Shown here: positions 6,057 through 54,842 of the stretch, in pieces
Position numbering within the stretch: the first letter of the stretch is position 1
How the letters are laid out: each line of letters begins with the position of its first letter
Assembly (NCBI GenBank): GCA_904063045.1
Contig: CAJFCJ010000019.1
Span: forward strand, 1,875,700 to 1,939,699
Reading direction: 5' to 3'
Length of the DNA: 64,000 nucleotides
Source of the DNA: Dimorphilus gyrociliatus
Lineage: Eukaryota > Animalia > Annelida
Made by a program: the position numbers and the translations under genes
The notes under the pieces: model-generated
The model's input: only the letters and a program-made list of their open reading frames with translations
Databases searched by the model: none
Told to the model about the DNA's origin: nothing

Positions 6057-9000
6057 CTAAAAATATCCTTTTCGCTTTTTGGTTCGAATATATAAGAATA
6101 AAAATGTTAATAACGCAATTAACACCATTAAACTACCACTGGAAATAGCAATAATTAAATAAGTCATTTGAGAATTTCCAGTAAGAATCCCTTTTAAATT
6201 AGACGTTGTATCAACTTTCACTGGATCAGATGTAGTAACGTCATTCACTACTGTAGTTGAGAAATAGTTATCTTTTTCTGTACTAACTTCTACCGGTTCA
6301 GATGTAGTAAGATCTCTGGAAAATATTGTATTAACTTCTTTCAATGTACTTTGCGGTCTTTCAGAAGTGTTCTCATCTTCGTTTTTTGTTGTCGTAACCT
6401 CTAATTCTTCTCCTTGTTGAATATAAACAATAAATGTAGATGTACTTGAACAAGGATCATCAGATTTATCCGATACAATAAGGCGGCTTTCAAATCGTCC
6501 AACAGGAAGAGGATACTTTATTGTTACAATTTCTGACGAATTTTCCATCACTTCAAATATATTCCATTCTCTTTGAATTTTCTCAAGCTTGTACGTCATT
6601 TCTCCTTTTAGACCAGAATCAGAGTCAGTTGCTACTATCCGAGATACAAGAAATCCCATAGGTGTAGTCGAATTTAACAGAATTTTATCACTCAAAACAG
6701 GATATTTAATTACTGCACATTCATTTACATCGTTTACGTTAATATCTACGAAAGCTAAAGAAGATAACTTTGATAATGTATTCTCCGTTGCCCGTACTTC
6801 TACACTATAGCTTCCCGGTTTAAATTCTCCACTAGATCGCAACACTCCTGTTATTTCGTCGATTGTTACTGAAATATTTGAGTAGCCTAAAGTATAGACG
6901 ATTCCCTTAGTAGATCCTATATCTGTGTCATTTGCTTGAATTTGTAATAGATATTCATTGGCCGAAATCAGTTCATCAACAACTACTGTATATTCATTAC
7001 TGAGAAATTGTGGTTTCTCTATATTTGGGAGTGCCTTTTGTGAACAATCATCACCTGCAAGACCTTTCTTACATCTACAGACGTTTGGTGCTATACATAC
7101 ACCATTTCCTGAGCAATTAGATTGACTTTTACAGGATGTTTCAGAGCATTTTAATCCAAACCATAAAGGATCGCATGAGCAATTGTCAAATGAAATACAA
7201 CTACCTCGACCAGAACAAAAATCTAATGATTCACATGAAAATTCAGAACAAGTCACTCCTTTGAATCCCAAATCACACTTGCATTCATTAGCCGAGATAC
7301 ATGTACCATTTATTGAACAGGGCGGATCACATTCTGGTATACTACAGTTTCTTCCACTGAATCCTATGTCGCATATACATTCTGTTTCATTCTTACAAAT
7401 TCCATGACCATTGCAATTCATCAAGTCTGGACAAAATTTCAGAGATTCGCAGAAATCTCCCTCAAATCCATTGTTACATTCGCATTTATTTGGTTCTATG
7501 CACTCTCCATTCAATGAACAGTCTTTCTCACAAATTGGAATAGAACAAGAATCTCCTTTCCATCCATCTCCACAAAAACATTCATCGAATCCAAGACACG
7601 ATCCATGATTTGTGCAATAGTTGACATTCTCACAAGAATATTGTGAACAAGTCGGTCCTGTATATCCTAGTTCACATTTACATTTGTCATGATCAATGCA
7701 CACTCCATGGTCTGAACATCCCTTTTCACATATTGCTACCTCGGAACAATTGTTACTTGTCCAACCTATTTCGCATTCGCAAACACCAGATTTCACACAA
7801 ATTCCTCTCGAAGAACAATTACCTTCACAGACAGCCTCAATCTCACACGTTGATCCTTCAAAACCTTTAAAACAAGAGCAGAATCCTTCAGAACAATTAC
7901 CATGTACACAATCAACACATTCGCCAATCTGACAGTATTCTCCAGACCATCCATCGATACAGACACATGCTTTATCTTGGCAAGTTCCTCTATTTGAGCA
8001 TTGATTTTTACATTGTTTCAACGTCAAAATACCTTGTTTCGCTATAGTAGGATCATCCGACATAACAACGTCGTATATGCATTTTTTCTTGTCATCTTCA
8101 TTCACATCGTCACCTGCACACAACTCTGAAGCAAGATCAATTTTCGATTGGTTGATATGCTGAAGGCTATAGATAGGCTTATGAGAGGAGAGAGTATAAC
8201 TAGAATCCATAACATCATCTTTATGAAAGTTAGATAGATGAAAGGACCATGTGTTTAAAAGACCTCCATTTTGCCGATAGGTGTTTGTCATTCTCCATGA
8301 CTCAACAAAATCAACATGTGATGTAAAGTGTTGACCGTTTGGACCTTTAAAGTCATCAGTGTCATCATCATTCATCAGTCCACATATTCCCGAAGTACGA
8401 TTAAACATTTCTTCACTGGCAGTGATTGATAAACTCAAGTATTGACGTTGCATATTTTCACTGAACGATGTGATAACGGATATAGATGATCCACTATTGT
8501 ATTTAACTGATGCTATCAGAATGGTGGGATCCTTTTTATTAACAAGCGATGATTTAGGTGAAATATCTAAGCGAATTGTATCATTATCGAACTTGTATGA
8601 ATGATTACTTTTGAGGTTACTAAGAAGAATTCCATTCAATCTGAGAGAAGGAAAATCTTTAGCCGTAACATTCAGTTTAGTGGACACAGTGAAAATAGAC
8701 GAATTTCCTAGTTTGATGGCAATCGCTCCTATGAATGATGTTGTTTTATGTGCATAGAATCGGTATTGATATGAAAGAGAAGGTGAAATACAACCCGAAA
8801 ATTGACCAATGCCAAAGTAGTCAAATGTTTTACCATCGAGTGTTTCTAAATGAGGATCACCCCAGACTGCTCTTGGAGTACGTATTTCACACGCACTACC
8901 CATCCATTGTCTAGAGCATCGACATGTTGATTTACAATTGCTGGTTGGTATACAAACACCACGATTGTTACAATTTTTTGAAGGACTACAAACTGGTTTT

Positions 9001-12000
9001 TCACACTCTTTTCCTTCCCTTTGAGGTAGACAAATGCCATTTATACCACATTGATTTCTGCAAATGCATTCGCCAGATGGTGATCTTTTTTCAATTCCAC
9101 CTCCGGAACATTTTGAACATGGACGACACCGGCATTGCCCAAATATCAATCTTGATAGGGTTCCATCAGGACATGCACAAGAACAAGAGGTATGTATGTT
9201 GTAAATATTTTTGGCGGATCCATCGGGACAGCAGAGACAAGCTCCTGATTCAAATTTATAACTGTATTCCCTTTTTCCGTTTTTACATTTACAAGGGCAC
9301 ATACATTGCTTGTTTTTCCTATTATAAAGTCCGTTTTTGATATCATATCCAGATTGACCGCATTTACAAATATCGTACTTTCTTTTATTGTTACGATCAT
9401 AATGCCAACATTGCCTGAAAATTGGTAATGTTTAACATCAGTCACATTCAATGATACAAATTACCTGAATAAAAGGAAATCTTTTTGTACACAATTGATA
9501 CAAAATATCTCTTTGTCATAGGCAGAATAAGCTATGTTTCCTTTAATCATAACTTCATTCAAGGCAACAGTGGCGGTGTTAGCTTCTGTTTTATCGCAAA
9601 TATTTCCATCAGAGTATCCAGTTTTAATTACCATTTCTTTAGTTATTACCATATTCATAGATGATTGATAGTTTCTTCTTGTAGAAAGTTGTTGAACGTA
9701 TATACCTGTTATGTTTTACATTGATGATGTGTATACATAATTATAGATAAAATATTCTTAATAATTGTAATACTAACTTGCAAGCCAGTTATTTACGGAT
9801 TTCCAAGAACCTTTTCTACTGAAATACTTCACGATGTTTGTGAATTTATTATTTTCTTTGTATAACGGCCATTTCATTGAAAAACTTGAGCTAAATGGGA
9901 TATTTACTTTTCCATATCCTATTCCATCCAATGTTGATTGACAACTTTTTCTTTTCTTTTCTGTTGTTGTCTGATGATTGTCTAATTTATTTTTGTCGTA
10001 GAAGATGAGGGAACTATAAGATGAACTTGAAAGTATACATTTATTAGACCGAAATATGAAGTTTCCTCTTGATTCAAGAGATACTGATCCAATTGAGAAC
10101 TCTGACGTAGACATCATACCCAGAAAATTGAAACCTTTAATATCGTATCTAAATAGATATTTGCCTCCATTTTTTGAAAGTAATGGTTCATATTTATATA
10201 TCGGTGTTTCTTTTTGAACAGAAATATCGTAGTTGATGTCAATATCATGATTGATTTTCATGGATGTCTTTAAATATTTAATACCCTTATCTGGAAGAAT
10301 TTTTATATCCAATGTTGCTTGAATTGATGAAGTGTACTTTGATGTAATTGAAATTTTAGCTTTGTTATTCTGTTGAGAAAAGTGGTAAAAAGATAATTCA
10401 CTACTAATTATCGCCCTTTAGTTTCAAATACTTACATCTAGTTTGACAGATGGAGAGTTCTCTTCAATTGATAGTTCCGATTTTTCAGAAATTGTAGTAA
10501 ATGAACTACTCTTTTTTATAATTTGATTATATTTTACAGTTGTTCCATCCATAGCATTTGTCAACGATCCTAAATTGATTAATTCTATTGCTTTCCATCC
10601 ATTCGACAAAGACTTTGTGTTTATTACGTAACCGAGAGAAGTCAACGCTTTTCGACCAATAATAATATTACCAACATCAACAATATCATCACCTTGTGAA
10701 TAATATAGACTTTGATGAATATCGTCGCCTCTACAGTATAATTGAGATGAATAAACTTGTATTTTGTCAAACTCTTCATTTTTAATGTTAGCGGTTGAAC
10801 AATCTATTAAAGTTGATTTTAAAAACACGTCTTTATTATTTGTTTGTTGAGAACTTGTAACTTTTTCGAGAAAACCAGAAGTATTTTTTATAATAATAAT
10901 ATCTTTTTTGTCATATTGATCAAATCCCTTTAGTATGATATAATAAGACCAAACAGATTCACCTTCGTATAGGTATTCTTCTCCCAAACATTTTATGTTA
11001 ATTTTCTTATCAATTGTTTTCATCTGCTGATTAGAATCGAGAAATCTTGATAGTTCATCAGTTGAAGGAGCCAAATTCATGATATTATTATCCTTAATAT
11101 TATCAAATTTACCGATTGTTTTTAAGTGAGCATATTTAAATATATCTAATGGATTTACTTCATGCACAATCAATATTTCGTAATTGGATAATACGTTCAT
11201 ATTATTCAAGATCTTATGATGAACACCAACATTATTTCGACTTATTATAACATTTCCAGCAGTTTTGACAACATCATATCCATCTAATATAAATATTTCG
11301 TGTTCGTCATTGAAATCACCATTCAATCTCTCATCGCTTTCACATTTGTACAATGTAGAAGAATCCGGTATTTGAATCACATTGTCTTTGAATTGAATGT
11401 GATTTAATCTGTCTTCAGAGGTCAACTCTGGACGTGGAAAACCATCTTTACAATTTTGTTCATCCCAAACTCTACAGCCAGTCTGTGTTCCTTTATAACA
11501 CTTTAAAATGTCAATACATTGTTCGCATGCTTCATAAGCAGTATTAGAACAATAACGTTCATTACAATTAAATGATAATATTTCATTGGAACAAAAATTT
11601 GGCTTCACGCTTAGACAGTTCCAATAAAACCAGTCAGGACAGGATCTCTCCGGTTGATTTGGCGTTCCTGGCATACATCTTTGACTAGAATCACACCATC
11701 CACATCCATCTTTTTCTGTGCATTGTTTACAAGATGTATATCGTGGACATTTTGATATTGAACATCTGCTGCCATACCATCCGTCTTTACATTTACAAAA
11801 ATTTGGACCAACACATTCTCCATGGCCATTACAGTTTCCAACATCCTTACATATAAATTCTGAACAATCGCTCCTAGTCCATCCTGCATCGCAAATGCAT
11901 ACTCCCTGAGAACAAAGTCCTCTTTTAAAACAATTGTCAGTACAAGAAAAAGTTTGCGTTTCTTTACAAACAAAAGGCTTTATAATATCATTTTTGATAA

Positions 12001-15000
12001 AATGATCATTGGGTTGTTGAAACTGGCCAGAGTTTGAATCCCATATGTCAGTACTCTTTAAATGATAGTTGAAATCATTGTATGTAAGTATTTGTCTGAT
12101 ATCATTCATTAATCGAGATGTTGTAACAAGATCTGAAAATCTATTTATACAAAATTCAGAGGCACTCTGATAGCTTAATGGTCCAAAATGAAAGTAAAAG
12201 CAAGAATTATCTATATCTTTCCATCCGCTTAAACCACAAAATGAACTGATATGAATATTTTGAGGAATATCATTAAGACTTTCAGAATAATTAAGATTAT
12301 TCAGAGTAGAAACGTGTCTTCCATCATAAACCCTACGATGTATGTTTGATACATCAGTTTTACCCCACCAGTTCCTAGAGCAATCTTTTAAACGATATCC
12401 AGAGTTAGAATTAAGACAAGCAATTTGAAATGCACTTTTATCATCATCTAAAACATTTTCCGTAATTTTAATACTTTGTGCAGATGTAGAAATGATCTTT
12501 GATACTTTCTGGTCGAGCACACTATTGTCATTAAATACACTATGTGTTATTATCAACACTCCATTATTTTTACTTGGAGAGTGAAAAAGTAAATCGTTCG
12601 TAGCTTGATTTCTATATAATGTACTCGTATTCATATAAAAATCTGCATTTATTATCTTTATTAATTGTTGATTGCTTGAGCATTTTTCGATTAAAGTTTT
12701 CGTAAAGAAAACTCCAAGTTTCTCTTTGTTGAAATTGGTAAGTTCAAAAAGCGTAAAACCTTTATTCTCGTGTAAAACACTTTGAATTAGTAATACTTTC
12801 AAATCGTCACTAGGCATATAAACATTTTCTGAAAACTTTAGATTTATTGCAGTCCTTGTAGACTTTTTAATGCTTAAACTTTTCATATAAATTGTTGAGC
12901 GTTTAGTTATGACGTCTATAGATTTCTTATTTGATGAGAATTTTAAATTTTCGAAATGTAAATGACTCTTATGTTGTAAAGTCTGATAATTAATATCTAT
13001 ATCCGTATCTTTACCTTTTGTAAATGAACTATTTACCGTACGATATTCTGTGTCGTCATCCTTATCGCAATATATGAATTCTGGATTTGCAAATTGCAAA
13101 CATCCTTGAAAAATAATGTCTATCTTGATTGAGAATATAATATTTCTTGTTTTATCAACATGAATATCTACAAAGTCCCATTCTGTACTTTCTGAAGGAA
13201 TTTCTTGAACATCTTCTGTTATGCTATTTTTAAGTACTACTTGCATTGATCTTACATCTCCATGTAAATAATATCGAAAGTAACAGAAATTATCGGTAAA
13301 GGAAAGATTTTCGTGAGTTATATTGACCACATGCTCTGAACAACAACTCTTTTGGCTGAACAAGATGGAATGTTTAAAAAAGTTTGGGACTTGTTGCGAC
13401 AACGAAGAGCAGTCTGTCTGTTTTAACTCATTTGTCTTGAAGATTGAATAGTCAGACGTTGGAGATTTTATTTTCCAGCCACATAGATTTTTCTCAAATG
13501 TACATTGAGTTACTGTATAAAAATCCTTATACAATATAGTATAATTCCTTTTATTATAAAGTTACGAACCTGGTCTTTTCATCGAAGAGAAGAGGATCTT
13601 TAAGGGTTCAGAGCTTAGATAACTGTTTATTTGTATTCGCATGTCAGTTTCGTAAATATAGATTTCTCCCTGTCAAGAATTGTAATTATTATACGAATGA
13701 CTATAGAGTTTATATTTACATTGTTCACATTGTACTCTTGCGGTAGGATATAAGATGATCCATTTTTCGGAAAAATTTGTATTACTTCTCTTTGAAGGAT
13801 ACCAGACAAAATATTCACTTTAAAAATAAACCCAGAAGGAATTGTTAAACTTGCAGAGCATCCTTCCTGGAAGAAGTCAAACCAATTTGAATCAAACCAT
13901 AACGATTGACGTTGCAAATCATGAACAGTTCCAATTGTACAGAAAGTAATTGGAGAATGAATTGAATCTTTTAAAATGACTTTGTCTTGACGATTTAAAT
14001 GACTTAATTTAATTGAATTTACATTTTCATTAAAATTACTATTTTCAATAGAAATTCTATTGAATGAACCTATTAAGTCAATTCCAGTTTCCTTTATCGA
14101 TTCTACCAAAATATTAGATATAACTAGGTTGTGAAGTTTATCAAATGCAACGATTTGTAAACCGATTTCAGATGATGTGAAATAAGACTCAGTGACAAAC
14201 ACTTCTTCGTAAGACAATAAGCTTAAAAGAACACCGTCAAAAACAGCATTTTTTATATAACCACTACTGCCTTTCAAACTTATGACTGCAGCATTGAATT
14301 TTGTAGGCAAGCAACTAAAAAGGATAGTTCCAACTGAATTTGCTTGTGAAACATTTTTACATTGAGAAAATTTCGTAGCATTATAACAATCAAGGATCCA
14401 CCCAGTTTCAGAATAGGGTATTCGTACTACTGGTTGTGAATCTGTAGTTAAAAGAGTTTAATACACATGATAGATATTATTCCATTGTATACCTGAATCT
14501 ATTAATTGATGAAAATGTTCACAAACCATCTTATTTACATGAAAAAGCTCTTTAATGTGAGTACTTGTTATATTGAATTTAATAGCTGTTGTTCCATATT
14601 TCTCGGAAATCTCTAAATTACCATTGGAATCTAGGATAAAATTATTATGTTTTTGTTTTAAAGCCCTAAAATAGACAACTTCTTCATTCGAATTTTCAAT
14701 AGAAAAAGATCCATTTACTATTAATTGTTTACCAGCATTAAACGTCATCGATGTACCCTGACGTAATATCACTAAATCTCCATTAATTACTGTCGTATCT
14801 TCAATCAAAATATCACCTCTAAGCTCTTGGTTTCCTTTAATATATCCACATAGGATATTTGACTTAACTTTCTCTTCTTCATCAAAATATTTTAGAGTAG
14901 TTAATCCAGCATCCGAATAACTTGGAGATAAATGAACTTTTACCAATAGACCATTTTCGTTTCTATCATATAGTTTTGTATAAGGATTTTCGGCATTGAT

Positions 15001-17967
15001 ATAATTATAAGTTATATTCAATTGACAATGATCAATATCATTCGCTCCGCAAAGATAATGACAATCAATTTCATAAGTACTCTCCTCATTATCAATAATA
15101 TTCCTTGTTATGAATGGAAAAATTTCTCCTTCAAGCTTAAAAGTAGAATAGACAACATTTTTGGATAATATATTATTGGTGATATGATGATAAGTATCAA
15201 CAGAATAGAGAAGCTTAAAATGTGCTGCTGTACTAAATATTTTACAATTTTCAATGAGATTATTTGTAAAATTAAGATTTGAATTACTAATGAAAACTTG
15301 AAAGGCATTCATTGCAGTACAATTTTCAATAATATTGTTTCTTATAGTAACTTTTCCAATTTGATTTTCTGGGTTTCTTAAATGATCATCTATTTTTATT
15401 AAGTTTTTTATTATTGAACAATTAATAAATTGGTTATGTTCAAAAATTAATCCATAATGAATATTTTCAATATTAATAACAGACCAAAGGCTTATATTTA
15501 GAAATTTGTTATAGCTGAAGAGATGATTATTTAAAGAGATACGTCTATATTCTAAGCCATTCAAAATTTCAATTAAATTATGTTTTGAAGAGGAAATTAT
15601 ATTATCGTCATTTGTAAATGTATTGTTTCTGATAGCCAAATATGAATCTGATTCTTTTCCTTTGTAAGTATTGTAAATATGTAGAAATGTTTTAACAATG
15701 TTAATTATTTTATTATCTTCGATTATAATCTTATATTGTCGTCGCTGCGTAATCATTTTTATAAATAAACGATAATATACTTTAAGGTGAATAAATATAT
15801 TATTTCTGATCTCCACTACATTGATATTATAAATATCCAGAGTTACTTCAGAATAATTATTCTCTATTATTAAATGAGCTCCAGCGTTTACAAACGTCAA
15901 TAAAGTTGTCTGAGTTTGAAAATATTTAATAATTATTACAATTGAAATAAATTGATTATTAATTAACTTGTTTTCTTTTTAATTAAATATTTTCATACTC
16001 TTAAAAATCTATTATTCGTAATTTCAGTTTTTGATGATGCCATGTAAAAATCACCACTGGTTATATATAAAGATTGGTATTTTCTTGCATAAAACGTATT
16101 ATTTTTTATTGAAATTCTATGCTTTGTCCGTTTTAACAGTGTAAAATATAAATTTACATTTGAATCTTCAAAATAACTTGATTGAATGGTTAACACTTTA
16201 CAAACGGCTTGTAAAGTAATTAAGCAGTTTCTAGATGTTACGTTATTTAACTCTAAACTTTGAAAAGATTCAAATGTTAGCCCAGTATGCATATCACAAG
16301 TTGAATAAAAATTAGAAATAACGCTGATTTCTTTAACTAAATTAATGTAGAAAAATGATATAAAAGAATTTAATTAAAAAGTAATAGTAACCTTCTTTAA
16401 AAGAATTAATAATCAAGTTTTCATGTTGTACAAGAGTGCAGTCAATTGTTACATTTCGACTGTCAGATATAAGTGAGACACAGTTCCTTTTTTCGCTATA
16501 AAGAAGTATTTCATTGCCGTCATAAATTTTGCATTCATCTTCTAATTTAAAGCAAAGGCTTTGTATCTCAAGCACTTCATCTTCTCGAGCAATAAATGTC
16601 TTTAAGAAGATTATATAACATCAATTTAGCTTATAAATTATTACAAACTTATTCATACTTTTTTAATCTTCTGTGCAGTTTGGACGCGATAACTGACCGG
16701 ATATGTGACGAGACTGTCATCGCAAATATCACAAACCAAATCTTCTATGTCTTTAAAAGAGTATAACGATGAAGGTGGCTTTGCAATTTGTATCAGATTA
16801 TGTTTATTATCTGTTAACAAGATGGTAGTTTAATAATTTATCATTTATTATTTAATGAAAAAGTAATAAATCTATTACTTTCCGCTCTGAAATCATCAAT
16901 CATAAATTTGTCTTTTGATTGAATATAAACACCGAAGAAATTATTTTCCAGAACAATTGAATTTAGATTATAACTATATGACTTCCTATTATTTATCATA
17001 GAAATAGCGTTAAGAGACGTTGAATTGCTAATCTGTATATTTCTAAAAAAGAAAACAACTGTGGTAAACTGTGTTTTTGTAGTTAAATTGGAGACACAAA
17101 CTTATATTGCACGACGTTAGAATCTTCAATGACAAAGGCTGCCTTTTCACTTACTACATTCGCTATAGACACTTCGTTTGAATTTCTGATCATAACTCCA
17201 TTGTTTAATCCGTCATCACTTGACAAATAATGTCTTACTGTAAGACTCTTAACATTCCCATTTGCTGTTGAGTATATTAATATTAAAGGTGAATTTAAGT
17301 TATCGTAAGTAATATTTACATATAGATCTCTTGCAATTTCTAATATCATTTGTGGTAGTAGAACATTCAATTTCTTGGCAAGTTCTCGATGTAGATGATG
17401 AAAACGATGTCAAACTTGAGGCTTCTAGAGCTTCCTGCAAAAGCTATACAAACAAAATTTTTTAATTTAATCTTTCTACTTTTCCATTGACTTCGACTAG
17501 TATTAAAAGAAATTACTTGTAATACTTTACTACGCGAACTATCGGTGTAGCATAGATGAACATATTCATCATTAACTTTGAATTGTAAGCTAAACACTTC
17601 TGATATATTAAAATATGTTGTTAAAAGATTATTTTACAAATGTTACTTTCTTACTATTATATATAATATCCAAAATAAAATTGTCTTTTTCAGGAATTTC
17701 TACAACATTCATATGTATTTTTTCATTTTCCGATCCATTCATAATGACTGCACCATGTTCTATTATTATTTTATTGAATTGAGAAGAAAATGTAATATGT
17801 GCACCAGCTTGAACAGTTAACGATGATGGTCTTACAGTAGTTATGATTTTATGATATCCAGAAGGAATAATCATAGCTTTTCCATTATATTTTTCATCGT
17901 AATCAAGGCATCTTATCCAAGATATAGTCGTTAATAAAACAATAGTATAAGAGTAAAGTAATAACAT
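6057..17967 (-). CDS. Giant mosaic type-I membrane protein, copy A (~3680 aa): SP, 2x[beta-helix/SRCR-like/CUB-like], MAM, beta-helix, CTL, EGF, PSI, unassigned region, VWD (GDPH), EGF array, 2 cadherin-like domains, stalk, TM
   Basis: The ATG at 17967 opens the signal peptide MLLLYSYTIVLLTTISWIRC. There are 14 GT..AG introns: 17600-17654, 17435-17516, 17265-17319, 17043-17101, 16811-16878, 16600-16658, 16337-16391, 15910-15998, 14442-14492, 13670-13719, 13513-13569, 10370-10435, 9706-9777 and 9415-9464. They total 868 bp and leave an 11,043-nt in-frame CDS. Motifs: MAM (TQCTFEKNLCGW), CTL (CGLSGWKDIDNSCFYF), PSI (YTSCKQCTEKDGCGWC), VWD (WGDPHLETLDG), cadherin (QIQANDTDIG, ATDSDSG), TM (LIIAISSGSLMVLIALLTFLFLYI). 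Confidence 0.85.
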
Positions 17968-19157: not shown

Positions 19158-19998
19158 ATGGCGAAAATGGAATTTTATTCAATATTTATCCTAGGTAGGT
19201 CAACATAAATATGATTTTGATAACTTTATCTTGAATTTAAACTTTATAGTATTAACATTTTAAAGCTGCAGCAATACTCTCTTTGTCAATCTGCTATGAA
19301 AATAGATTTGAAAATGAAATTGTTTCCTCTCTTCTATCTAAATTAAATGAAAAGAGAGACTCTAAATCATTCTGTCAGACTGGAGTGGAAAGATGTAAAG
19401 ATAATTATCAAAAATCATATAGTACTATGATTTTTCAGGGTTTCAATTCCAAGCAGTTTTGTTCTATAGCAGAAAAGCAAGAATCCTGTTTAGCTTTAGT
19501 TAATAAGCCACCTTGTATGCTTGCTAATATTAATGACTATAGACAATTTGCAAGAGATGTTTGCAATCAAGGTATAACTGTTTTTAAATAATGATAATTA
19601 ATAATTTCCTAATTGTCAAGTTTATTCGAATAGATTGCCAAGATCCTTTAGATTTTCTAAATGGTAAACTGGGAGAAAGTGTTTGCGATTTTAAAATTCC
19701 TTTTAAAACTATTCTACAGCAATGCCAAGCTTATAAACAGTCACTTTTTCCAGAATTGGAAAGTTTACAATGTAACAATTAAGATAATTAATTATAAATA
19801 AACAGAACGTAATATATCTTGAATTCAATTATAGGTCGTAGAAAAACGAATGCTACTCCAAAAAGAATTATAGTCAATACGCCTAGTGCCCTGACTGGTA
19901 AACAACCAAAACCACATGGCAATAACGGTCAAAATTACGCAAGTGGATATGTTTCCTTCGTATTTCCTATTATTTTTGGTCTGAAAAGATTACTATAA
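19158..19998 (+). CDS. Small secreted Cys-rich protein with hydrophobic C-terminus (putative GPI anchor), paralogue G3, ~214 aa
   Basis: Exons 19158-19194, 19266-19571, 19634-19771 and 19835-19998 give 645 nt in frame. Cys spacing C-x6-C-x21-C-x8-C-x8-C-x15-C is identical to G1. Exon 3 is 138 nt as in G2. The protein ends YVSFVFPIIFGLKRLL. Confidence 0.75.
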
Positions 19999-25300: not shown

Positions 25301-25406
25301 CAACATCTTGACCGCTCAGAATAGAATTGATTTCCAAAACAAAAGTGTCTGTATTTTCATTGAAACTATTTAAAAAGACGAAATAAACTATACAAGAAAC
25401 AATCAT
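22348..25406 (-). pseudogene. Copy D: internally deleted, frameshifted pseudogene of the giant mosaic family (closest to copy B)
   Basis: The N-terminus INSILSGQDVVLE...LKSLSIEAGVRLTFSS matches B's INSLLDGQDLILD...LKSLVIKAGARVTFST, and several intron positions are shared with B. Lesions: a frameshift near 24850, an in-frame TAA at 24466-24468, jumps from the first CUB-like region to TGIEVYGKL and from the second supermodule directly to QPGLYEIVVNAIDNGVP (cadherin), and a further frameshift in the stalk near 22660. A TM is retained. Confidence 0.85.
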
Positions 25407-41758: not shown

Positions 41759-44700
41759 ATGCATTTTGCATTTATCTTATTGATTGTAATAAATTTACAA
41801 TCGATATTGACGGAAAACATCTCTCCTGATAATAATAATCAAGATTTGGAGTTGTACTCAAAGACCTACTTTATTGAAGGTGTTGTTAAACCTAAATCAT
41901 TAGCTATAAAGGAGGGTGCAAAGTTAATATTTCAAAGTGATCAAAGTCGAATTGTTATTGAAAATGGTAAAGTTATAATAAATGGTACAAGAAGTCATAA
42001 CGTCTTTGGACTTTATCATAATAACGAAAAGAGTAAAGAATATATAAAAGCCCAATATACTCATAAGTTGAAGAAAAGTATTGAAATATAAATTGTATGA
42101 TAGCATAGACCTTATTTTATTGATATTACTTTTACATTATAGAATTGGATTATATTGAATATATTCCACTAATCAGAAATGAAAGTGTTGATGGATTTAA
42201 CGATAAAACGAATGTTAATTATGTAAAGATATGCAGAGAACAATTACATTCCATTGATACAATAGGAAAGGTTTTATTAATTTTTCTCATCTAAATATTG
42301 TCTATAGATCAATTTAAACCTTTTCTTTTATCGTTATCGTTTTTAAGCTTGCAAGCGAATATTTAGGATACGATAAGGATAGAAAATTCGAAATAATAGA
42401 CGAAAAGGAGAGAGATAGATGCTGTATACTCGAATGTTTATCGCATGGCCTAGATATTCGAGAATGTGTTATTAAATGTATGTAAATTACTTTTTTTGAT
42501 GTTTTTCTAAATTCCTATAGGCCTAGATTAATTGATTTATTTTTTTTAGATGAGAAAATTGATTATCCATTGAAAATTAAAAGTTCAACTTCGAGGTTAC
42601 GATATGGAATTGTTATAAAAAATTCAAAACAAGTATTTATCAACCATTTTGAAGGAGTAAGAATTGGATTGCATATATTTAACTCAAGAATTGAATTAGT
42701 AAAGTAAATAAATTATTAGAATATCTTCTTCTTCTATTTTATCCTTCCTCTTTTAGATCTATAAAACTAGAGGATGTATCGTTCTCCAAAGCGGCACTGC
42801 TTATTGAAAATCAAAGACGAAATGATGAATCCTCTTTATATTTAAGTAACATCCATGTTAAAAATAACTCCAATTTTGGTTTGTACATTGATTTTCCTGG
42901 AAAAGTGCATTTGAGTAAGTTTTCTGCCAGAAAAAACAAATTAGCTGGAATATTTTTGACATCAACCGTAACACTTATTCAACCGAGTGGTGTTATTACA
43001 AAATTAAACGATTTAGACTGTTTAACGTGCGATTCAAATCTTTGGCATTCAATATTTTTTCAACTTAATTATCAAAAGCCAACGAAGAAGGTGATAATTG
43101 ATTACAAATCATTTTTTAATATCATTTATTTATATACCAATCTAGATTCTAAAAGCAAGAAGCGGAGACGTTATTTATGTAGAAATATATAAATCGAATA
43201 ATCCTATTAATATAACAATTAGAGATGGAAAAGATGAAAATTCACCAATTATTCTTCACAATTGCCAATGGACTAGCGATAAGAATATTCGTCTTGAATC
43301 AACTGGTCAATATTTAACAATATTAACCGAACCAATAATTAATTCGAATAAGGTTATAATCTTTCTAAAATCAGTTAAACCTAAATCAACATTTACGGTT
43401 ATAAATCATGGAGAGACGCACAAAAATGACTATGGATTAATTATTTATAATTTAAATTATCCTATATATATAAAAAATTTAGACGTTGATAAGAATAATG
43501 AAAATGGATTATCAATTTATAATCCCATTTTTCATACTATAATAAGGCATAGTAGATTTACCGGAAATGAAAAAGGATTAAGATTAGCCTACGAATGGGG
43601 TTCGCAAACTATTGAAAATAGTACATTCTCATCGAATAAGAACGAAGCTATAGATATTACAAAAGAAGATAGTGAACAACTAAATAGTAATATTAAGATT
43701 AGCAATAATACGTTGAATAATCATAAAACACATACAACAATTCATATTGAAACAAAAGGCGTTTCTAGTGTAAATATTGAAAATAATAAGTTTATTAATG
43801 GAAGAGCTACAGATATCAAATTGAAAAATCATAATGATAAGAAATCGAAAACAGTAAATTTTATTGTAAGAAACAATAGATTTTCTTGTAAGGATGCTAC
43901 TAAGGATTATATTATCAGTTGTAATGGAATATCATCAATAGAGATAATGAAAAATATCGTTGAGAATTCGAAGAAAGGATTTTTAAGAATTATGAATAGA
44001 TTAAACGAAAGCAGTGATATTTATATTAGAGATAACACAGTGAAACATTGTTTAATACCAAAGCATATAATTGATATTGGGAGAAAAGCTGAATTTAATA
44101 ATAGAGATTTAGTTAGAATTAAGAGAAATTCATTTATCGGTAACTATCCAAGAGAAATTGATCATTCGAATAAGCAAACAGCAATTATCGTAATAAATGT
44201 TTACGATATAAGGATAAATGAAAATATATTTGATAATTATAAGTTTGATAGAGAATTAACTCTACCGAATTCATTAGCAAATAGTGAAATTATCATAAAT
44301 AAGAATGTAGACGCTAGAGAGAACTATTGGAGAGATGTAAACGTTTTAAATTGTGTTGACGGTCATTTTTCATCGTATAATTATAGAGGAGTACTACTTT
44401 CTCCAATATATTTAGATAAAAATCTCACAATTCTAAAAGACATTTCATTGGAGACTAATGGAAAAGAGAGATTTGAAGGGGACTTTAATAGCGACATTAT
44501 TATTACCAGTGGAGAGTATAGAATGACTCGCAATTGTCGTATCTTAAAAAGAGCTAAAGTTACCATACAACCTGGTGTTGTAATTAGAGCATCACCGAAT
44601 ACTGGTATAGAAGTTTATGGTCAATTAGAGATTCTAGGAACTCCTTCGTCAAGAGTTATTATAAAATTAGACAGTGCACCCGACAACGACACTGTCAATA

Positions 44701-47700
44701 TACATAGAGACAGTAGAGTAGAAATTATAAAATCTAAAGAGTCGATGTTTGTTTGCTATACGAATGACGAATCTATTGCACCTTTTAAAGCGCTTTGCAA
44801 AGCGGCCGGCTATGGCGTATACGAAAAACATTCATTCAAATTTGTAGATAATAGCGTAAATGGTTGGAAAGTTGAATGTACAAATGACAAATACGATAAT
44901 TGTATTGTAAAGAAAGCCAAATGTACCGATGGATATTTGACGTTGAGATGCGGTAAACAGCAAGAATGGTCTGGTATAAATTATCTTATTAATTCAAAAT
45001 CAAGTATTATACAAGGTTTAACCTTAATTGGTTCTGGCCGATTAGGGCACGATCTATTTTTTGAATTATTCCAACATGAATTAAAAGATATTAGAATTCT
45101 ATCGAAAAGTTCAAAGAATTTATTAATATTGCAATCAAAATTGGAGAATATATTAAAGATTAACGATTTAGAAATATATTCAACGAAAGTTAATGGAAAA
45201 ACGATTATTAATGCTTTAAATGTTCAATTTAATGGATTAAAGCTGTTTAATACAAAGGTTGTTTTGGGTCATTATAGGAAAATTGATTTTCTTCATTATT
45301 TCAATAGAGACGAAGATAGAATAAGTAATATCGAAAAATGCCCAAAAGTTCCTTTCTATATTAAGCGTGGTGAACAATTAATATTAAGAATATTAATACA
45401 CAAGGGTTTATCTTCAAAGTGTAATTTGGAAATGTTAACTCAAAAGAATAATAGATTAATGCTATATATCTTTCCTATAAGATATAATTCAAGAAAATCT
45501 ATTGGATGGATTGAAGATAAGAATAATAAATATCCTATAACCAGTGAACCTTTTAATTATTTGGCATATAATAGAGTAAATGTTATACTAAATTCAGGAG
45601 ATTATATAGCTCATTATATAATCGTTAATACCGAAACTTTGTATATTACACTACCAAGAATTGAAAATAATTTAATGATACAGAATTCATCGTTTAAATC
45701 TAATGGAGAATATGTTAATTATATTGAATTTGATACGAATTTCAATTATAATATCGATATAAAAACAACAAATTTTACGTATGGAAAATATTTAATTTAT
45801 TCAAATCGTAAAATCTTCTCGAATAATAATTTAACATTAAAATATTCAAATATTAAATATTTGCATCATATTTCGCCGAAACCAATTAAAAATATGATTA
45901 TAAAAGATTGCCATTTTAAAGGAACTCATCATCCTTTTCATATTCATTCAAAAGAGATAATTAACTATCCAATTACAATTGAATTTTTAGATAATTATAT
46001 AACTGTTGAAATGGAAAATCCATTCAAGTATGGACAATTGAAATTTCGAAATTCAAATAAGAATAATTGCCTTATTAGAATTATTAATAATAGATTTAAT
46101 GATAAAAGAATATACCAGAGGAAACCATTGAAAAATTACCTTAATTTAAATGTTGATTGTCAAATAAGAATTGAAGAAAATAGATTTATAAACTTTCATT
46201 ATTATCATTCTATTTTACATATAAAAACATTAAATAATCATATAAATTTAATGGATAAAATGAATAGAAGAAAGGATGTTATCATTAAGAAGAATTCATT
46301 TGAAAATATTAATAATATTTCGAATTGTATTGAATTTCATTTGGTTAGAAGTTCACTTGAGATGATTGAAAATAATTTTACATCTTGTTTAACAAGTCAA
46401 AGTATTCTAAATTTGAATATATTCGACGATAATAGAAAATATTATAATCTAAAAGGAAACGCTATCGTTCAATGTTCAACGAAACATCTAATTAATATAG
46501 CCGGTAATATTATTCCAATTATTGAATTGAATAACTTTAATAGCGTTTGTAAATTCTATTTACATTTAAAAACTATATGCCCAATTAGAAAAGAGAAAAG
46601 TTGCATCTATAATATTCCGTATAATTATTGGGGTTCTCGTAAGAATTTATACGAGAGATTTTACGATGGAAATTACGATTCTTTCTTACCCAGACTAGAT
46701 CCGTCACCAATCTATTTAACAGAAAATTTTACCCTTAAAACCCAAATTGAAAATTTAAATGAAAAATATAGAATACACCTTAGCGGATATATACAAGGAG
46801 ATTATCTCTTAAAAAATTCAATAGTACTTACGGGAAATGTTATTATTGAAGATAATCTGGAAATCTCTAGACAACAAGATATTGAGATTATATTTAAAAA
46901 ATGCCATAATCTATTGATAATACGCGGTAGACTTACATTTGGAAAAGTTACTGATTTAGAAAAGAAGTCTACTTTAAAATTTACATGTTTAGATAGAAAA
47001 GATAATTTACCAAATGTTTATTATTATCAAAGTCAATTTCCGGTTGTTTTTGATAATTTAATAATAAAAAATGTAAATTTTATATTTATGGGTACACCTC
47101 CTCCGAAAATTGAAAATTGTATATTCGAAAGGGCACATATCAAATTGATAAGGACTTTTGGAGAAAATGATAATTTCACTGTAAAGAATGCTAAATTTAC
47201 ATCGTCGAATAATGGAAAAAATGATTATATTTCATTAGTACAGAATCGTCATGATACTATTATAGAGAATAGTCATTTTAAAGATGGATATTCAGCTGTT
47301 CGTTGGAGTAGCGATAATAAAGATTCAACTTATAGTAAATTGAATTGGCCTACTTTGTTTCTTTGTATATATGGATCTATTTATGAATTTTCGGAGAATG
47401 ATTACGGTTTATCGCTCGACGTTGAACATTTAGAAAGATATAACGCTGTTGGATGTTCAACTGAATTTATTTCGCCTATAAATCATATTATAAAGATTAT
47501 AATTGAAACTGAATTAGACGATAGATTATCGCTTGTTAAGATATACGATGAATTGGGTAACGTATTAGTAAATGGTAAATTAAGACAAGCTAAAACTATT
47601 ATATACTCTGAAACTAGAAAGATTAAAATTGAACTTAATTCAAAGACAAACTATCATTCTGACTTTAAACTATTCATTCAACCTGTTAAAGAATCTTCCT

Positions 47701-50700
47701 ACCTATGTACATTCGAAGGATCGAATTGCGAATGGAAAATTCCAAATATACTACCAAAATCATATTCATATTTTAATCGAATTCAATCCGCAAACGTAAA
47801 TTTTATAGATGGATTTAAATACGATGCAACCTATCCATCTTCGACCAATGGTCATTATTTTGCAATGAATATTAAAAGTGAAGGGGATATTTTGGCAATT
47901 CCGGAAATTTATGGGAAAATCTTTGATTCAATGCATAATCTATGCTATTTTAAAATGTACGCTTACAGTTCACATCCGAATCAAGTATTACTCATATCCG
48001 TTGATATATTCGACGCTTATGGACCTAATCTGCACCTAAAGACAATAGATTTAACAAACGACTGGAAATTATATAGAATACGCTTGAAAATTGTTAAAAA
48101 TAGAAAATTTCGTTTAATTATCAAAACTTCCAGTGAATTAGAATCAAATATTGTTATCGGAATTGATAATACGGATTACGAAGAGTGTAGGAATGAAAAT
48201 AAGCAAGTTCAAATAACTGATACTACATTTAGTAGTATTAGTGAAGAGTCTATTCAAATTATTAATAAAGAATACGGTAATAGTATTAAGATAATACTGG
48301 AAAAATTGAACTTTAATATTGGATTTAATTCAATTGATATCAATGTCTATAACGCTTTAATACTTATTAGAAATTCAAATTTAACTTCTTTAGATTATCT
48401 TAATCTACAATTTAATTCGGATAAGAGATCAAAAGTTATCTATACTCAAAATGAAGTAATTAGCGATATATCCAAACATTTTATATTCAAATTAGAAAAT
48501 AACGGAAATGGTCAAGTAACGAGTCTAATTGAAAAGAGTATATTCGATATAGTATTGAGATCAACTACATTAATATCAATTAGAAATACTTATCTTTCCC
48601 TTGACAATAACCTATTTGAAATTGTCGTTAACGGGCCATACGAGAAAACTATTATTAATCATCAGTCGCCAAATTATGGATTGAAAATAACGAATTGTAT
48701 CTTTCTTACGCAGAGTAAAATTAAAATCATTTCTTCCAGATCACGAAAGATTCTCTTCAATAATAATATTGTCGAATACGGAACAATTGATATTAAATTA
48801 AGAATGGACGAACATCTCTCTCTGCAACGTAATTGGTGGGGAACGAGAAAGATGAATATTATCACTAAACGAATTATTCATAAGGAAAGTGATAAAAATT
48901 TAAGATTTGCTCTCAAACCAATATTTGAATTTGAACCTAACAGTATGTATCTATCTGTTGGATGTCCTATAAAATGGTTTGAATATAGAGGCTATTGTTT
49001 CTATTACCATCTTTCGCCGGCAAGTTACGAAGTTGCCTATGAATTTTGCGATCGTCAATACTCAACTCTTCTAACAAGAAAGGATTTGATTGAAAATCAA
49101 CAACTATCTTCTTGGATCAAATATAAACACTTTAATGGTTTCCATATCAATGATATATGGACGTTAAACGGACGATATAAATATAAACAAACGGCCTCTT
49201 GGATTTGTAAAAGGAAAAACTCTGGAATATGCCCCTTCAATTGCTTTAAAAGAGGTACTTGTTCGAGAGGTGTTTGCCATTGTCATAGTGGATGGGAGGG
49301 AACATATTGTACAAAGTTTACTTGTAAACAAATTGAAAATTGTTCGAATCACGGAAGTTGTACGGGACCGAACGAATGTAAATGTAATCCAGGTTGGCAC
49401 GGTCCAACTTGTGGACAATCGAAATGCTCTAGATATTCAACATGTTATGATTGTACAAGAAATTCAGGTTGCGGTTGGTGCGATTCAATAGCGAAATGTA
49501 TGCCAGGAAATCCGAAAGAATCGTTTTTCGACTGCAAAAATCATAGTTGGTTCTATAGGAGTTGTTTAACACTCTCAACAGGAGGTTGCTCAAAATTTAT
49601 ACAAAAAATAAATTGCGAAGATTATTGTAGATGGTCGGAAAGTTCATTGTGCAAACAATGCAGAGAATTTGAAACATGTTTCAACTTGGATTCATTAGAT
49701 TGTTCACCATTAAACGAATCACTCTGTCCTGGAGGTATTCCAAAATTTGACTTTTACGGACCATTTAACAAATTAAACTCAATAAAATTGAATGAAAATT
49801 TAATATCTATCGACGATGATAAATTATACAGATGTAATTTAAATGCTAAACAACATTTTAATGGAAACAATTACGAAATACTAATTATACCTAGAATAGT
49901 TGAATACGAAAGAGGTTCTGTAATATATAGTTCAAAAATATCTGGTATAATGCATAAAGTAATTGATTATGAATTAAAATTGAATAATTATACATTGGTA
50001 TATGGAGAATATATATTACCTTACGATCTATTAAATTCTGGACATTATAAATTTGATGGTAACGTTATTAATAAATTTAATAATATCTATTATTCTGGTA
50101 AATTAATAACAAACGATGATATTGATAAATTGAAAATGAACTTAAAGGAGTATATGTACACAAATATAGATCAATATAAATCGTATAAGATAATCGGAAA
50201 GGATTATTTATATAAGGGAGAAAGAATTGTTTATTCTTATTATTTAATAACGAAATATAATAAAGCAAAGATAAACGATATTCTCATTTCGAAAACGTCA
50301 AAAGGATTTTTGGAAGAGATTGAAAATAAAAGAAAATATAAGAATATCGATTTAATTATTGAAACAAAATTTCTTAATGGAATTAATGGAGTTTATATAA
50401 AAAAATTTAATAATATCTCTGAATTAGAATCGAAGCTTACTTGCGATATGAATAATAATAAATATGGATTATATTATTTAAATTATACTGATAATTTAAA
50501 TGAATATGATTTAGTAGTTAATAAGAAAGAATCGCCACTATTATCTATTGTTAAACAATCAAAATCTATTGGTAATAATTGGTATTTAATAGAATTAATT
50601 GATTTGTTTACAATACCTATAAATTTTAATAATCAACAATTTAATTGGAATGATTATAAGATTATTACAGATGAGAATGCAATAACTGATCCTTCAACGT

Positions 50701-53700
50701 TTGCGAAGAGATTAAATAATACGTTTATATTGGACGATTGTATAATAAATTTAAATGGAAAATTAACGGAATTTTTTAATTTTGGTACTGAAATTAGAGT
50801 ACTACCGTATGAATCATTAATTGATCAAGTAAAGTTAAATGTTCAATTAAATTTTAGCTTTAAACTCAATTTAATAGCTATTCCCAATAATCGAATGGAA
50901 ACGACAGTTAAAATTGATAGAGAACGATTCGGTTATCAAATGAGAAAGTATTTTACAATAAATTTCTTAAATGTTGATATATTAGGAGTTATCGATTTGG
51001 TTAATGTCGATTTGGACTTGCTAGAGGGACTAATCGTTGGAAAAGTCATGGGAAATGCATCAATTTCAATAATAAATGAGTGCTTTCTGACTTTTGCCTA
51101 TCGTAGAGGAAACGGTCTAAATATTATTGATAATGAATCAAGCTTTAAATTAATGTTCGCTAATCATTCTGGCGAGTGGAATGATACGATGGATCTTACA
51201 GCCAGTTTAAAAATTAATTTTAACATTAAATGGCCTTATTTAAATTCTAATCAAGATACGCTGAGGGGTAGAAACTCAATTTATAAATGGCAACAAGATG
51301 CACCATTAAATTCAATAGAGAACTGGTTAAAACGCATAGAAGAATCTTCACTATCAAATGATAATTCTAATAGAAAATCTTTAATATCTATCGAAAGAAT
51401 CCAAGAAATTAATTACAAATGTTACGTTAGTAGGATTCGAAAGACTTTTGTTAAAAAGTTTACAATTTCAACGGGTTTAAGTGATATTATTGGAAAATTT
51501 GAATTTTTCAACGAATCCGATCATAGAATTATTCAATTGACGAATTTCGGTAAAACTCTTCAAGATAAAAACGCAGATATTCGAGGAGATAAATGGAAAA
51601 GTCTATGCCCTTTTCACTACGATAAATCCGACTATGGAATGTTTGGGCTAGTTTACGAAAAATATAATATTTGCCTACACACTTGTACTTGTCCAAACGG
51701 AGAATACGGCCAAACTCTAATAGATGGAGAATGTTCGTGTTGTCCTGATGGTACACCCAGGCCATTTGATAATTTAAATTTCGAATGCCCTTGCATCTGC
51801 CCAAATGGCAGAAAATCAACTACTGGACCAAAAGGATGCCGTTGTAAGTCTTGTAAGGTTTGTCCCGATGGTAGGAGACCTCCAATAGGACCTGACGGAA
51901 GTTGTTTATGCGACAACGAATGCGGAATTGACGGTCTTTGTACACTAGGACGTACCGGTTTGCAATGCGATCAACCGTCCTGTCACTCTCTGAACAATTG
52001 TAACGGTCACGGAGTTTGCTTAAATACGAATGATTGCGGATCGTATTGCGCCTGTTTTCCCAATTGGATAGGTCCTAGTTGTGCGATAAGGGAGCATAAG
52101 ACTAGCAGGGGGTCGCCTAGCTTAGAAACTCTTGATGGTAAATCATACGAATTTTTTAGTATTGGACAGTTTTGGGGATGTATTTCGAATGTTATTAGCT
52201 ATCAATTACGATTTTTTGGTTATAAAACAACATCATTTATTGGAGCTATAGCAATAAGATTGGGAAAGTCTGATATATTAACTGTAAATGGTAAGCTGAA
52301 AGCGAAAATTACAGAACCTCCAACGATTAAATTAAATGGTAAAGAGATACTGAGCGAATATACGAATAAATTTAGTAAAAATTTCAAAAACACCGGCTTC
52401 GTATTGGATATAGATATGACAGAAAACGAACATATATTCACAATAATATCAATAACCCATTTTAATGGTTCAGTCTTATCAGTAATTGCAGATTATAGTC
52501 CCAAAATGAACAGACAATATTTAACTGTAAGTCTATTAGCCGGAGTAGATATGATGAACAATACGAAAGGATTATGCGGAGTAATGAATGACAATACGGC
52601 GGATGATTTTATGGGACGCAATGGTACAATTTTTACTTCTGTTGTCGACTTCATAGAATCTTGGAGAATTGCAAAAATGAGCCGAGAGAATGGAGGATTA
52701 GCCAATTCATGGTCGGAAATTGCATCTAATTTCCATTATGAAGATAGAATTGACCCTTTGTACGTTAATTCTAACCATCTGCCCAGATACATTTTAGATA
52801 ATATTGATGATAATCAATATAAGATGGCTGAAAATCTTTGCGAAACAGCTAAATTAATGGGAAAAGAAAAAATGAGTTGTGTATATAATGTTATAATTTC
52901 AGGGGAGGTCAATATTGCAAAGCATTTAACCTATAAATTAAGGGATTGTCGCGAAAATTGCTCCCTTCGAGGAGAATGCTACAATGGAAAATGTATATGC
53001 ATGAATGGGTGGTCAAGTGATGTTTGTAACGAAAGAAAATGCGTTGGCTGTTCAAACGGCATCTGTTCTGTTGGCTTTTGTCGTTGTAATCCAGGTTACG
53101 AGGGTCCAACATGTGATTATAAAGCTGATTGTATACCAGAATGCAAAAATGGAGGGTTATGCGTCAAATCCGGCCTTTGTAAATGTACGGATGGATGGAC
53201 CTCACCTGATTGCTCGGTAAAGGCTCATTGTTCAAAAGAGTGTTTGAATGGTGGTATTTGCGTCGACAACGATATATGTAAATGTCCTCCCGGATACAAT
53301 GGGACAAGCTGCGAGAATTATAGCTGTGAATTAAGAAATTGGTGCTCTGGCCATGGAATGTGTATCGATTATGATAAATGCCTTTGCTTTACTGGATGGA
53401 AAGGATTATCGTGCTCCAAACCCTTATGTCCTAAAGACTGTTCCGGTCGGGGGAAATGTCTGACATCTGGTGAATGCGATTGTAACATTGGATATGAAGG
53501 TTCCGATTGTAGTTTCAGAAAGGCGTGTTCCGTAAAGTCTAATTGCTATAAAAACGGCATATGCAAAAGTGATGATGAATGTCTATGCGATTACGGCTAT
53601 TCTACCGATTGCGAGAAAGAAAGTAGTTGTCAACTGTGTCCCAATGGACTATGTCAATCGAACGGAAATTGTGAATGTTCAAAGAGATATTTCAAAAAGG

Positions 53701-54842
53701 GTTGCTTCGCTAAATTCTGCGAAATCGATGAAGATTGTTACATGTATGGAGGAGCGTGTGTACATAATTGCCATTGCGCCTCGAATTGGATTGGTGAATA
53801 TTGCGAGATTCCATCATGTTCAGGTGTAGGACACTGTTCCGGAAACGGTTTTTGTATAAGACCCGACGATTGCGTATGCAATTTAGGATATGAAGGAGAG
53901 ACTTGTTCAATAAAATCTTTAAATGACTCTGTTACACTCCTTCCGTCTTCCGATAAAAGCTTTTCAAGGATAATTGATGAGCACTTTCCCGAAGGAGAAA
54001 TTATAATGACTGTCGCTATTGAAACGGACAATAAAGCCACCGTTAAAAATAATTTACGTTACTCAATGAACTCTCATTCTCTTCCTTTGGAGATCGATGG
54101 TGAAAAGGGTATTCTGCGTTCAACTGGAAAGTTAACACCTGGTAATTATCAATTAAAAGTCGACGTTTACTACGAAATGGATATTTATAAGTCAACAAGT
54201 TTAAATTTAAATCTAACTATACTCGACGTAAACGAATGTCCAATTATTAAGAGACCAGAGAATGGGGAGAAAATATTTATTGACTCTTTAACAACAATTA
54301 ATACGATAATTTATGAAATTGAAGCTTATGACGGAGATTATGGCATTAATTCGAGATTAATCTATGACCTTGATATTAATGGCAATAATGGAAGTGTAAT
54401 TGGTTTGGAAATTAAGAATTCCTCTGATACTATAATTACAAATAAAAATCCGTTAAACGAAGGTCGTTATGATGTAAACGTTATTGTTCACGATAATTCA
54501 ATCGATTCTTGCTCAAGTCGGGTCAGCTTTGAAGTTATTGTTTTCCCGCCAAATTTAAAGAAAGAATCGTTTGAAAAGGGATTTATTAAAAGGGAAAGAC
54601 CGAAAGATAAAGCAAAACCTTACTATTGGATTAATAAAAAGTTGAGAGAGACTACTCCCTATATAGAAAATGATACAAAGGAAATCCGCACGATAACTAA
54701 TCTTTTAGATCCGAATGGAACGACTTCTCCATGGGATAGCAAAGTTAGATCGTATTCATTATTTACCTTGGTTGCTATATTATCGTGCGCTTACTTTTCA
54801 ATTATCTCCTCTACCGTCCTTATATATTTGAAAATGTTTTAA
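41759..54842 (+). CDS. Giant mosaic type-I membrane protein, copy C (~4253 aa), 6 exons, the last 11,697 bp long
   Basis: ATG at 41759 with signal peptide MHFAFILLIVINLQSILT. Introns 42078-42142, 42271-42347, 42478-42549, 42704-42756 and 43091-43145. The frame is then continuously open from 43146 (ILKARSGD...) to TAA at 54842. The domain order matches A and B; the VWD motif reads GSPS. Confidence 0.9.

Follow-up and report, generated by a model that had tools for sequence, protein, structure and literature searches.

Proteins of the Bark/Anakonda kind are recognized by three extracellular repeats of SRCR, CUB and beta-helix units, a C-type lectin after the last beta-helix, a transmembrane helix directly after the lectin, and a long cytoplasmic tail. 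To our knowledge, vertebrates have no counterpart of Anakonda, and the literature that we searched says little about the history of the protein beyond the arthropods. The head of the fly protein engages in homophilic adhesion (PMC11698045), the Bark tail carries a PDZ-type end (PMC5509417), and the crab protein (SpBark) binds microbes and LPS and promotes phagocytosis (PMC6716108). Also relevant here are VWD domains with a GDPH motif, which is cleaved between Asp and Pro; residues outside the motif matter as well (i.e., GDPH is necessary but not sufficient), and a cleaved VWD protein whose first strand lacks a cysteine can in principle dissociate (PMC10880436).

Here, we describe a gene cluster of the annelid Dimorphilus gyrociliatus in which a Bark/Anakonda-type head is joined to a VWD-EGF-cadherin half, a build that we refer to as the long form. 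We conclude that the long form is real and that, far from being confined to this worm, it is an old variant of the Bark/Anakonda kind with a wide distribution. For the build as a whole, as the preliminary description of the locus had anticipated, we found no described family in the literature searched, a search outside of which most subscription journals lie.

Gene models and RNA support

The window, i.e., the whole stretch of 64,000 nucleotides that was analysed, has a GC content of ~30%. The models of genes A, B and C (Table 1) were assembled by hand from three-frame translations; their introns are of the GT-AG type and 50-91 nt long, and the spliced frames are free of stop codons. They bear out the three intact spliced genes and two broken copies that had been proposed, with protein lengths in the proposed size range. 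The RNA check covered B, and the introns of A and C, together with the remaining ones of B, are predictions. Spliced RNA contigs (run X2) skip six predicted B introns exactly, to the base (32476-32537, 33476-33533, 36671-36721, 37320-37371, 37531-37606 and 37710-37766), an in-frame intron of 51 nt among them. The contigs tile B nearly gap-free from position 34551 to the last exon, overlapping one another from the lectin/EGF region onward, with zero differences between RNA and genome over the region covered. In C, head and stalk belong to one gene because a single open exon runs from the first beta-helix to the stop. Hence, the fusion of the N- and C-terminal halves is real, as seen directly in the C exon and, in effect, in the B contigs.

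Two public gene models are corrected by the rebuilt genes. DgyrCDS11742 (3,918 aa) omits ~530 coding residues of B relative to our model, and DgyrCDS11743, to which the open reading frame at 43146-54842 was 100% identical in a protein search, splices out the membrane helix of C and fuses the gene to a downstream thrombospondin-repeat (TSP1) gene that has a separate signal-like start of its own. The other neighbours of the cluster include LRR genes and small four-Cys genes.

Table 1. Genes, domains and broken copies of the cluster (positions in the window).
Feature	Position	Strand	Remarks
Gene A	6057..17967	-	15 exons, 3,675 aa; repeat 2 mostly deleted, without SRCR2; GDPH retained; cytoplasmic tail ~10 aa
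A head: repeat 1, repeat 2 remnant, repeat 3	13604..17904	-	Anakonda-like
A MAM, last beta-helix, truncated C-type lectin, 3 EGF, PSI, Cys-rich unit	11426..13576	-	MAM by alignment only
A middle module (MID)	9291..11425	-	Unclassified
A VWD and C8-like unit	8025..8879	-	GDPH at 8861-8850
A 10 EGF, 2 cadherin repeats, Ser/Thr stalk, transmembrane helix	6090..8024	-	
Gene B	27060..41289	+	15 exons, 4,452 aa; expressed; six introns RNA-confirmed
B three head repeats	27141..33441	+	Beta-helix, degenerate SRCR with 5-6 Cys, CUB-like segment
B MAM, last beta-helix, truncated C-type lectin, 3 EGF, PSI, Cys-rich unit	33469..35677	+	
B middle module	35678..37890	+	Predicted three small beta-barrels and long-stranded beta-sheet, from the model of the coral relative
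B VWD and C8-like unit	38302..39156	+	GDPH at 38320-38331
B 10 EGF, 2 cadherin repeats, Ser/Thr stalk, transmembrane helix	39157..41256	+	Stalk 39% S+T
Gene C	41759..54842	+	6 exons, 4,253 aa; SRCR3 deleted; GDPH replaced by GSPS at 52110-52121
C single open exon	43146..54842	+	11.7 kb, 3,898 codons, first beta-helix to stop; without the 3' introns common to A and B
Copy D (pseudogene)	22351..25403	-	B-like; two large internal deletions, in-exon stop near 24465, frameshift near 22640
Copy E (frameshifted fragment)	~2527..3002	+	A aa 714-881, 47-52% identity; outside 6057-54842

Copy D matches B in three blocks (residues 1 to ~300, from the 5' exons; residues 806-1071; and everything from residue 4161 onward) with an identity of 31-45%, and its frameshift lies in the stalk.

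Domain architecture

A, B and C are type I membrane proteins with one, approximate, domain order: a signal peptide-like start, Anakonda-type repeats, MAM, a lectin-like domain, EGF/PSI units, the middle module, VWD, 10 EGF units, two cadherin repeats, a stalk, a transmembrane helix and a tail. The single shared order of the preliminary description stands in broad terms, but most of repeat 2 is gone from A, both SRCR3 and GDPH are gone from C, and the middle module, ~650 residues between PSI and VWD, had been missed. Pfam searches of the exons gave clear matches for the EGF arrays, PSI, VWD and cadherin, weak ones for the beta-helix, the C-type lectin, RGM_C and MUC4 C8-3, and none for CUB in A, B or C, the CUB-like segments being recognized by alignment and resemblance only. 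MAM was matched in B (E=2e-8) and C (E=4e-6). The structural model of the C head (residues encoded at 43386-45260; mean pLDDT 79) has the fold of a right-handed beta-helix, matched at a best Z of 29.2 with an rmsd of 2.4 over 289 residues, and the unit that follows it matches a fragment of TMPRSS2 containing an SRCR domain (TM 0.52 by target, E 0.015).

The coral relative evolves more slowly and shows the plan clearly (by Pfam: three SRCR, beta-helices, MAM, lectin-like, EGF, PSI, VWD, EGF and two cadherins), the worm copies being worn versions of it. For instance, the SRCRs of A, B and C retain 4-6 cysteines, and the worm lectins keep four of the six cysteines, with the second conserved disulfide and the long loop (EPN/QPD plus WND) that carries the calcium and sugar sites missing in all five intact paralogues. 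Because of these losses, glycan recognition by the lectin is doubtful.

There are 10 EGF units (60 Cys) per copy, a stalk rich in Ser and Thr is present in A and B, and 3-10 residues follow the membrane helix. With two EC repeats near the membrane and no tail, the proteins do not belong to the classical and atypical cadherins, which have at least five tandem EC repeats or a catenin-binding tail. The EGF arrays resemble those of VWDE, teneurin and tenascin, their six-cysteine units being matched by the EGF_TEN and EGF_Teneurin models, and this resemblance is why one coral member is labelled Tenascin-X. The likeness is, however, confined to the array, since the long form has neither the teneurin YD shell nor the FN3 or fibrinogen domains of tenascin.

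Nothing in Pfam or PDB profile scans matched the middle module. In the model of the coral module, three small beta units are predicted with confidence and a sheet whose strands are very long with low confidence, and no solved fold matched convincingly. Nearest to the middle module by language-model features (score 0.79-0.88) were bacterial DUF8402/DUF8403 and fungal DUF7029/7223 proteins, and the same proteins were nearest by predicted shape (TM 0.33-0.50); a DNA scan returned no bacterial relatives, and no sequence-level match to DUF8402/8403 was found. The apparent resemblance to bacterial DUF8402/8403 proteins is a lead only, with scores below proof. As for MID2 as a pore-forming toxin, we reject this for now: the perforin, gasdermin and porin rows from Foldseek did not reach significance (E above 1e-3 and TM ~0.1, with Z no higher than 6.5), and we dismiss them because such matches reflect the long strands only.

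Distribution across animals

A protein search with the N-terminal 2,000 residues of C returned C itself as the single match, which alone would have given false support for novelty; it was the conserved middle region that retrieved relatives. These were Oculina (4,853 aa), Montipora and Branchiostoma, then Nematostella (4,819 aa) and Stylophora (the member labelled Tenascin-X). A profile-free scan of 1.8 billion proteins, with the MAM-to-middle exon of B as query, added the sponge Oscarella pearsei (4,894 aa, a complete transcriptome ORF), the nemertean Tubulanus, the annelid Owenia, the brittle star Amphiura, Saccoglossus and many amphioxus models. The relatives are thus full-length in one sponge, one sea anemone, corals and one nemertean, and Owenia, brittle star and amphioxus contribute partial models with matching module order. 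Several models are partial, and the order is identical wherever the model is long enough. The worm genes belong to this long form, typified by Oculina LOC144628871 and Nematostella LOC5510655, with collinear BLAST and profile matches over the whole length. In the databases, the relatives are named "uncharacterized" or "protein bark beetle-like", or are mislabelled.

Accordingly, the lineage-specific system that the preliminary description had envisaged is rejected as a novelty of this worm, given full-length relatives from sponge to nemertean. By sequence comparison, the long form is an ancient, unnamed animal family that extends from sponge to amphioxus. What is specific to Dimorphilus is the expansion and partial decay of the family (five intact and two broken copies), not its architecture.

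Relationship to Bark/Anakonda

That the N-terminal half is Bark/Anakonda-like, as first proposed, is upheld by a profile of three ecdysozoan Bark proteins, which matches the head repeats of the long form. Three SRCR/CUB/beta-helix repeats are present in B (CUB by alignment) and degenerate in A (repeat 2) and C (SRCR3), and the C-type lectin follows the last beta-helix in all three, albeit truncated. The two builds part after the lectin. In Bark, including the Bark-like proteins of a centipede, a pseudoscorpion and a nematode, the lectin runs straight into the membrane helix, followed by a long PDZ-type tail (the nematode protein has such an end), whereas the long form has the same lectin ending and then continues through EGF, PSI, the middle module, VWD, 10 EGF, cadherins and stalk, that is, ~1,900-2,000 residues before the membrane. 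Further, MAM is inserted in repeat 3 of several long-form members (it was not seen in the sponge), and the worm proteins have nearly no tail. Because they are without a juxtamembrane lectin and a PDZ tail, the worm genes are not Bark by its membership criteria, although they share its head.

The tree of the shared part, built from sequences that did not include Drosophila Bark, recovers a Bark clade (100/100) and leaves the attachment of this clade among the long forms unplaced. No short Bark outside Ecdysozoa was seen among the homologues retrieved, in a search that was not exhaustive. Because the sponge has the long form and short forms were found only in ecdysozoans, truncation in ecdysozoans appears to be the simplest account of these sequences. 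It is possible, and we propose it tentatively, that the long form is the ancestral, self-cleaving and stalked Anakonda, that sponges already had it, and that Bark of the ecdysozoans is what was left once the part between lectin and membrane had been lost. If true, the long form would fill a gap among the components of the earliest epithelial contacts or surface coats of animals, and would bring with it a middle module that, as far as predicted structures go, may be common to bacterial surface proteins.

Expansion and divergence of the worm paralogues

The five intact worm paralogues (A, B, C, DgyrCDS10784 and DgyrCDS14436) form one clade on a long stem (100/100), and a second tree with four of the five recovered one clade again. 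Long branches and AT-rich composition are a caveat to this clade; however, it is supported despite the long branches because the shared intron positions agree (~12 of 14 matched between A and B). C has five 5' introns only, with no insertions at the other intron sites of A and B, a pattern that fits intron loss via recombination with a long cDNA. The birth-and-death expansion within this lineage that had been proposed is thus borne out by the clade and the two broken copies. The expansion stands out because the Dimorphilus genome has 1.63 genes per orthogroup and unusually small families (bioRxiv 10.1101/2020.05.07.078311).

Pairwise identity among A, B and C is 20-28% in the head repeats, 18-21% in MAM, 22-33% in the lectin, 45-52% in EGF3, 38-49% in PSI, 26-31% in MID1, 16-20% in MID2, 42-48% in VWD, 44-57% in the EGF array and 28-36% in the cadherins. 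Of the contrast that the preliminary description had drawn between a diverged N-terminal half and an easily aligned VWD, EGF and cadherin half, VWD and the EGF array conform, but the cadherins do not. The idea of a variable distal sensor on a conserved proximal scaffold is weak as well, since MID2 on the membrane side and the cadherins are about as diverged as the head. The same profile, with beta-rich modules low and cysteine-rich modules high, is found when coral is compared with sponge or nemertean, and we therefore attribute the gradient to module type more than to distance from the membrane; alone, it would be no evidence for a diversifying sensor. The dN/dS ratio is uninformative here because protein identities of 17-57% correspond to saturated synonymous sites.

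Putative cleavage sites

In the alignment, GDPH stands at the VWD start, between strands 1 and 2, in A and B as well as in every aligned relative from outside the worm (sponge, cnidarians, nemertean, Owenia, brittle star and amphioxus), as it does in MUC4, FCGBP, RGM and alpha-tectorin; in C, it has become GSPS. The motif suggests that the stalks of A and B probably cut themselves at this site. The strand before GDPH contains no cysteine in any aligned member, unlike the FCGBP-type tether. MUC4-type proteins are also resembled in the C8-like unit (the weak MUC4 C8-3 and RGM_C matches) and in the EGF units near the membrane and, by analogy, a two-subunit logic as in GDPH-type VWD proteins is likely. 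The long form has no long mucin repeat and no TIL/E modules, and its Anakonda-type head sets it apart from all four proteins. A furin-like basic run lies inside the middle module in most species and is missing in A, B and C. Because this site is lost from all three copies and GDPH from C, cleavage appears to be dispensable in some of them.

Possible functions

Our preferred reading, to which we give about an even chance, is a stalked, cleavable surface-coat, adhesion or scavenger glycoprotein whose head is held non-covalently, a function suggested by domain content and by analogy with better-known proteins. On the cell surface, the protein would form a tall tether, in which the EGF array, cadherins and O-glycosylated stalk could raise the head by tens of nm (at full extension ~70 nm, by textbook lengths of the modules). 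Should VWD self-cleave between the Asp and Pro of GDPH, the lack of a cysteine link in the first strand would leave a head of 2,700-3,500 residues non-covalently held and sheddable, like the two subunits of MUC4, and C would represent a non-cleavable variant. With its repeated beta-helix/SRCR units, the head may bind multivalently, within the surface coat, to neighbouring cells, to matrix or mucus, or to the surfaces of microbes. The tails would be too short for signalling alone. The ligands known from fly or crab are not transferable to the worm head because its SRCR and lectin are degenerate.

The readings as a surface-coat tether and as an immune scavenger overlap in part. Alternatively, the proteins might be diversifying pattern-recognition or scavenger receptors in which a variable head binds microbes and the stalk presents them for uptake, which we regard as somewhat unlikely. 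Consistent with such a role, independent expansions are seen in amphioxus (many models) and in Dimorphilus, in the latter despite its small gene families; LRR and small four-Cys genes lie nearby; and crab Bark binds LPS and aids phagocytosis even though its lectin is without the EPN/QPD/WND motifs (PMC6716108). The predicted beta-helix resembles polysaccharide-binding proteins, although a shared fold does not show function. However, the divergence gradient is largely family-wide, the low identities among paralogues rule out a selection test, and the lectin of the worm is missing two cysteines as well as the whole of the long loop.

We consider it unlikely that the long forms are Anakonda-like organisers of tricellular or septate junctions in non-ecdysozoans, their three repeats touching three cells and the stalk or shed head bridging the gap. 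The triple repeat, last beta-helix and lectin are homologous to those of ecdysozoan Bark, the homologues retrieved (not exhaustively) include no short Bark from non-ecdysozoans, and the calcium motifs of the cadherins are partly retained. Yet ~1,900 extra residues separate head and membrane, the PDZ-type tail of Bark (PMC5509417) is lacking, and the three-fold logic is broken in A, where most of one repeat is missing; fast turnover and pseudogenes are ill-suited to an essential junction gene, and the tree fixes no point of attachment for Bark among the long forms. For the origin of tricellular junction proteins, the long form offers a concrete way to ask, in Nematostella, Oscarella or amphioxus, if the recognition of cell vertices is ancient or if ecdysozoans turned a surface-coat or scavenger protein to this use.

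Finally, it is exceedingly improbable that annotation created the long proteins by joining a Bark-like gene to an adjoining VWD-EGF-cadherin gene: although some database models contain one half only (e.g., P0004 and P0014), separate genes for the halves are refuted for C by its open exon and in effect for B by its overlapping spliced contigs, and the sponge protein is encoded by one complete ORF. With a repeat lost in one copy, and an SRCR and a cleavage site lost in another, the worm cluster represents a natural series of variants of the long form.

Gene C and its public model

Over its 3' portion (43146-54842, plus strand), gene C consists of one 11.7-kb exon, which results from the loss of all the 3' introns common to genes A and B, with five 5' introns kept; cDNA-mediated intron loss fits this pattern. 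The public model of gene C, DgyrCDS11743, joins it to the thrombospondin type 1-like gene downstream, a fusion that, judging from the sequence, is probably wrong.

Middle module and distant relatives

The module between PSI and VWD, in P0005 (a long-form protein), its relatives and gene B, belongs to no Pfam family and is split by a furin-like site in most species. Language-model features and predicted shape suggest, as leads, that its closest look-alikes are hypothetical proteins from bacteria (DUF8402/8403), together with a DUF7223 cluster from fungi. The sponge member P0037 (Oscarella pearsei) carries more cadherin repeats than the two present in other members and gave no match to MAM, and hence MAM may be a later insertion in the long-form proteins. 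The coral member P0013 (Stylophora pistillata) bears the public-database name Tenascin-X, a label owed to its EGF array alone.

Flanking features

Features in and around the cluster
Position	Strand	Feature	Remark
1-2331	+	Long intronless ORF, ribonuclease-inhibitor-like leucine-rich repeats	Cut by window start
3590-3907	-	Four-cysteine ORF, ~100 aa	One of three alike
4743-5048	+	Four-cysteine ORF, ~100 aa	One of three alike
19256-19591	+	Four-cysteine ORF, ~100 aa	One of three alike
20399-22111	+	570-aa ORF, DUF1759 (BEL/Pao gag-like)	Tail to tail with pseudogene D
35678-37890	+	Middle module	P0005 residues 3011-3650 and relatives
55050-56835	+	Separate-looking gene, two thrombospondin type 1-like repeats	Signal-like start, hydrophobic segment
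57387-58568	+	GHMP kinase (galactokinase-like)	
58712-59641	+	Ubiquitin-like protein	
61194-62051	-	Kelch-repeat protein	
63564-64000	+	Probable F-box protein	Start portion

No pol was seen beside the DUF1759 ORF, and Pfam gave no significant match for the leucine-rich repeat ORF and none at all for the three four-cysteine ORFs. These three, on the cluster flanks, look related, each with four spaced cysteines, and at least one has a signal-like start. The last four genes, including the ubiquitin-like protein, which resembles midnolin, are ordinary neighbours.
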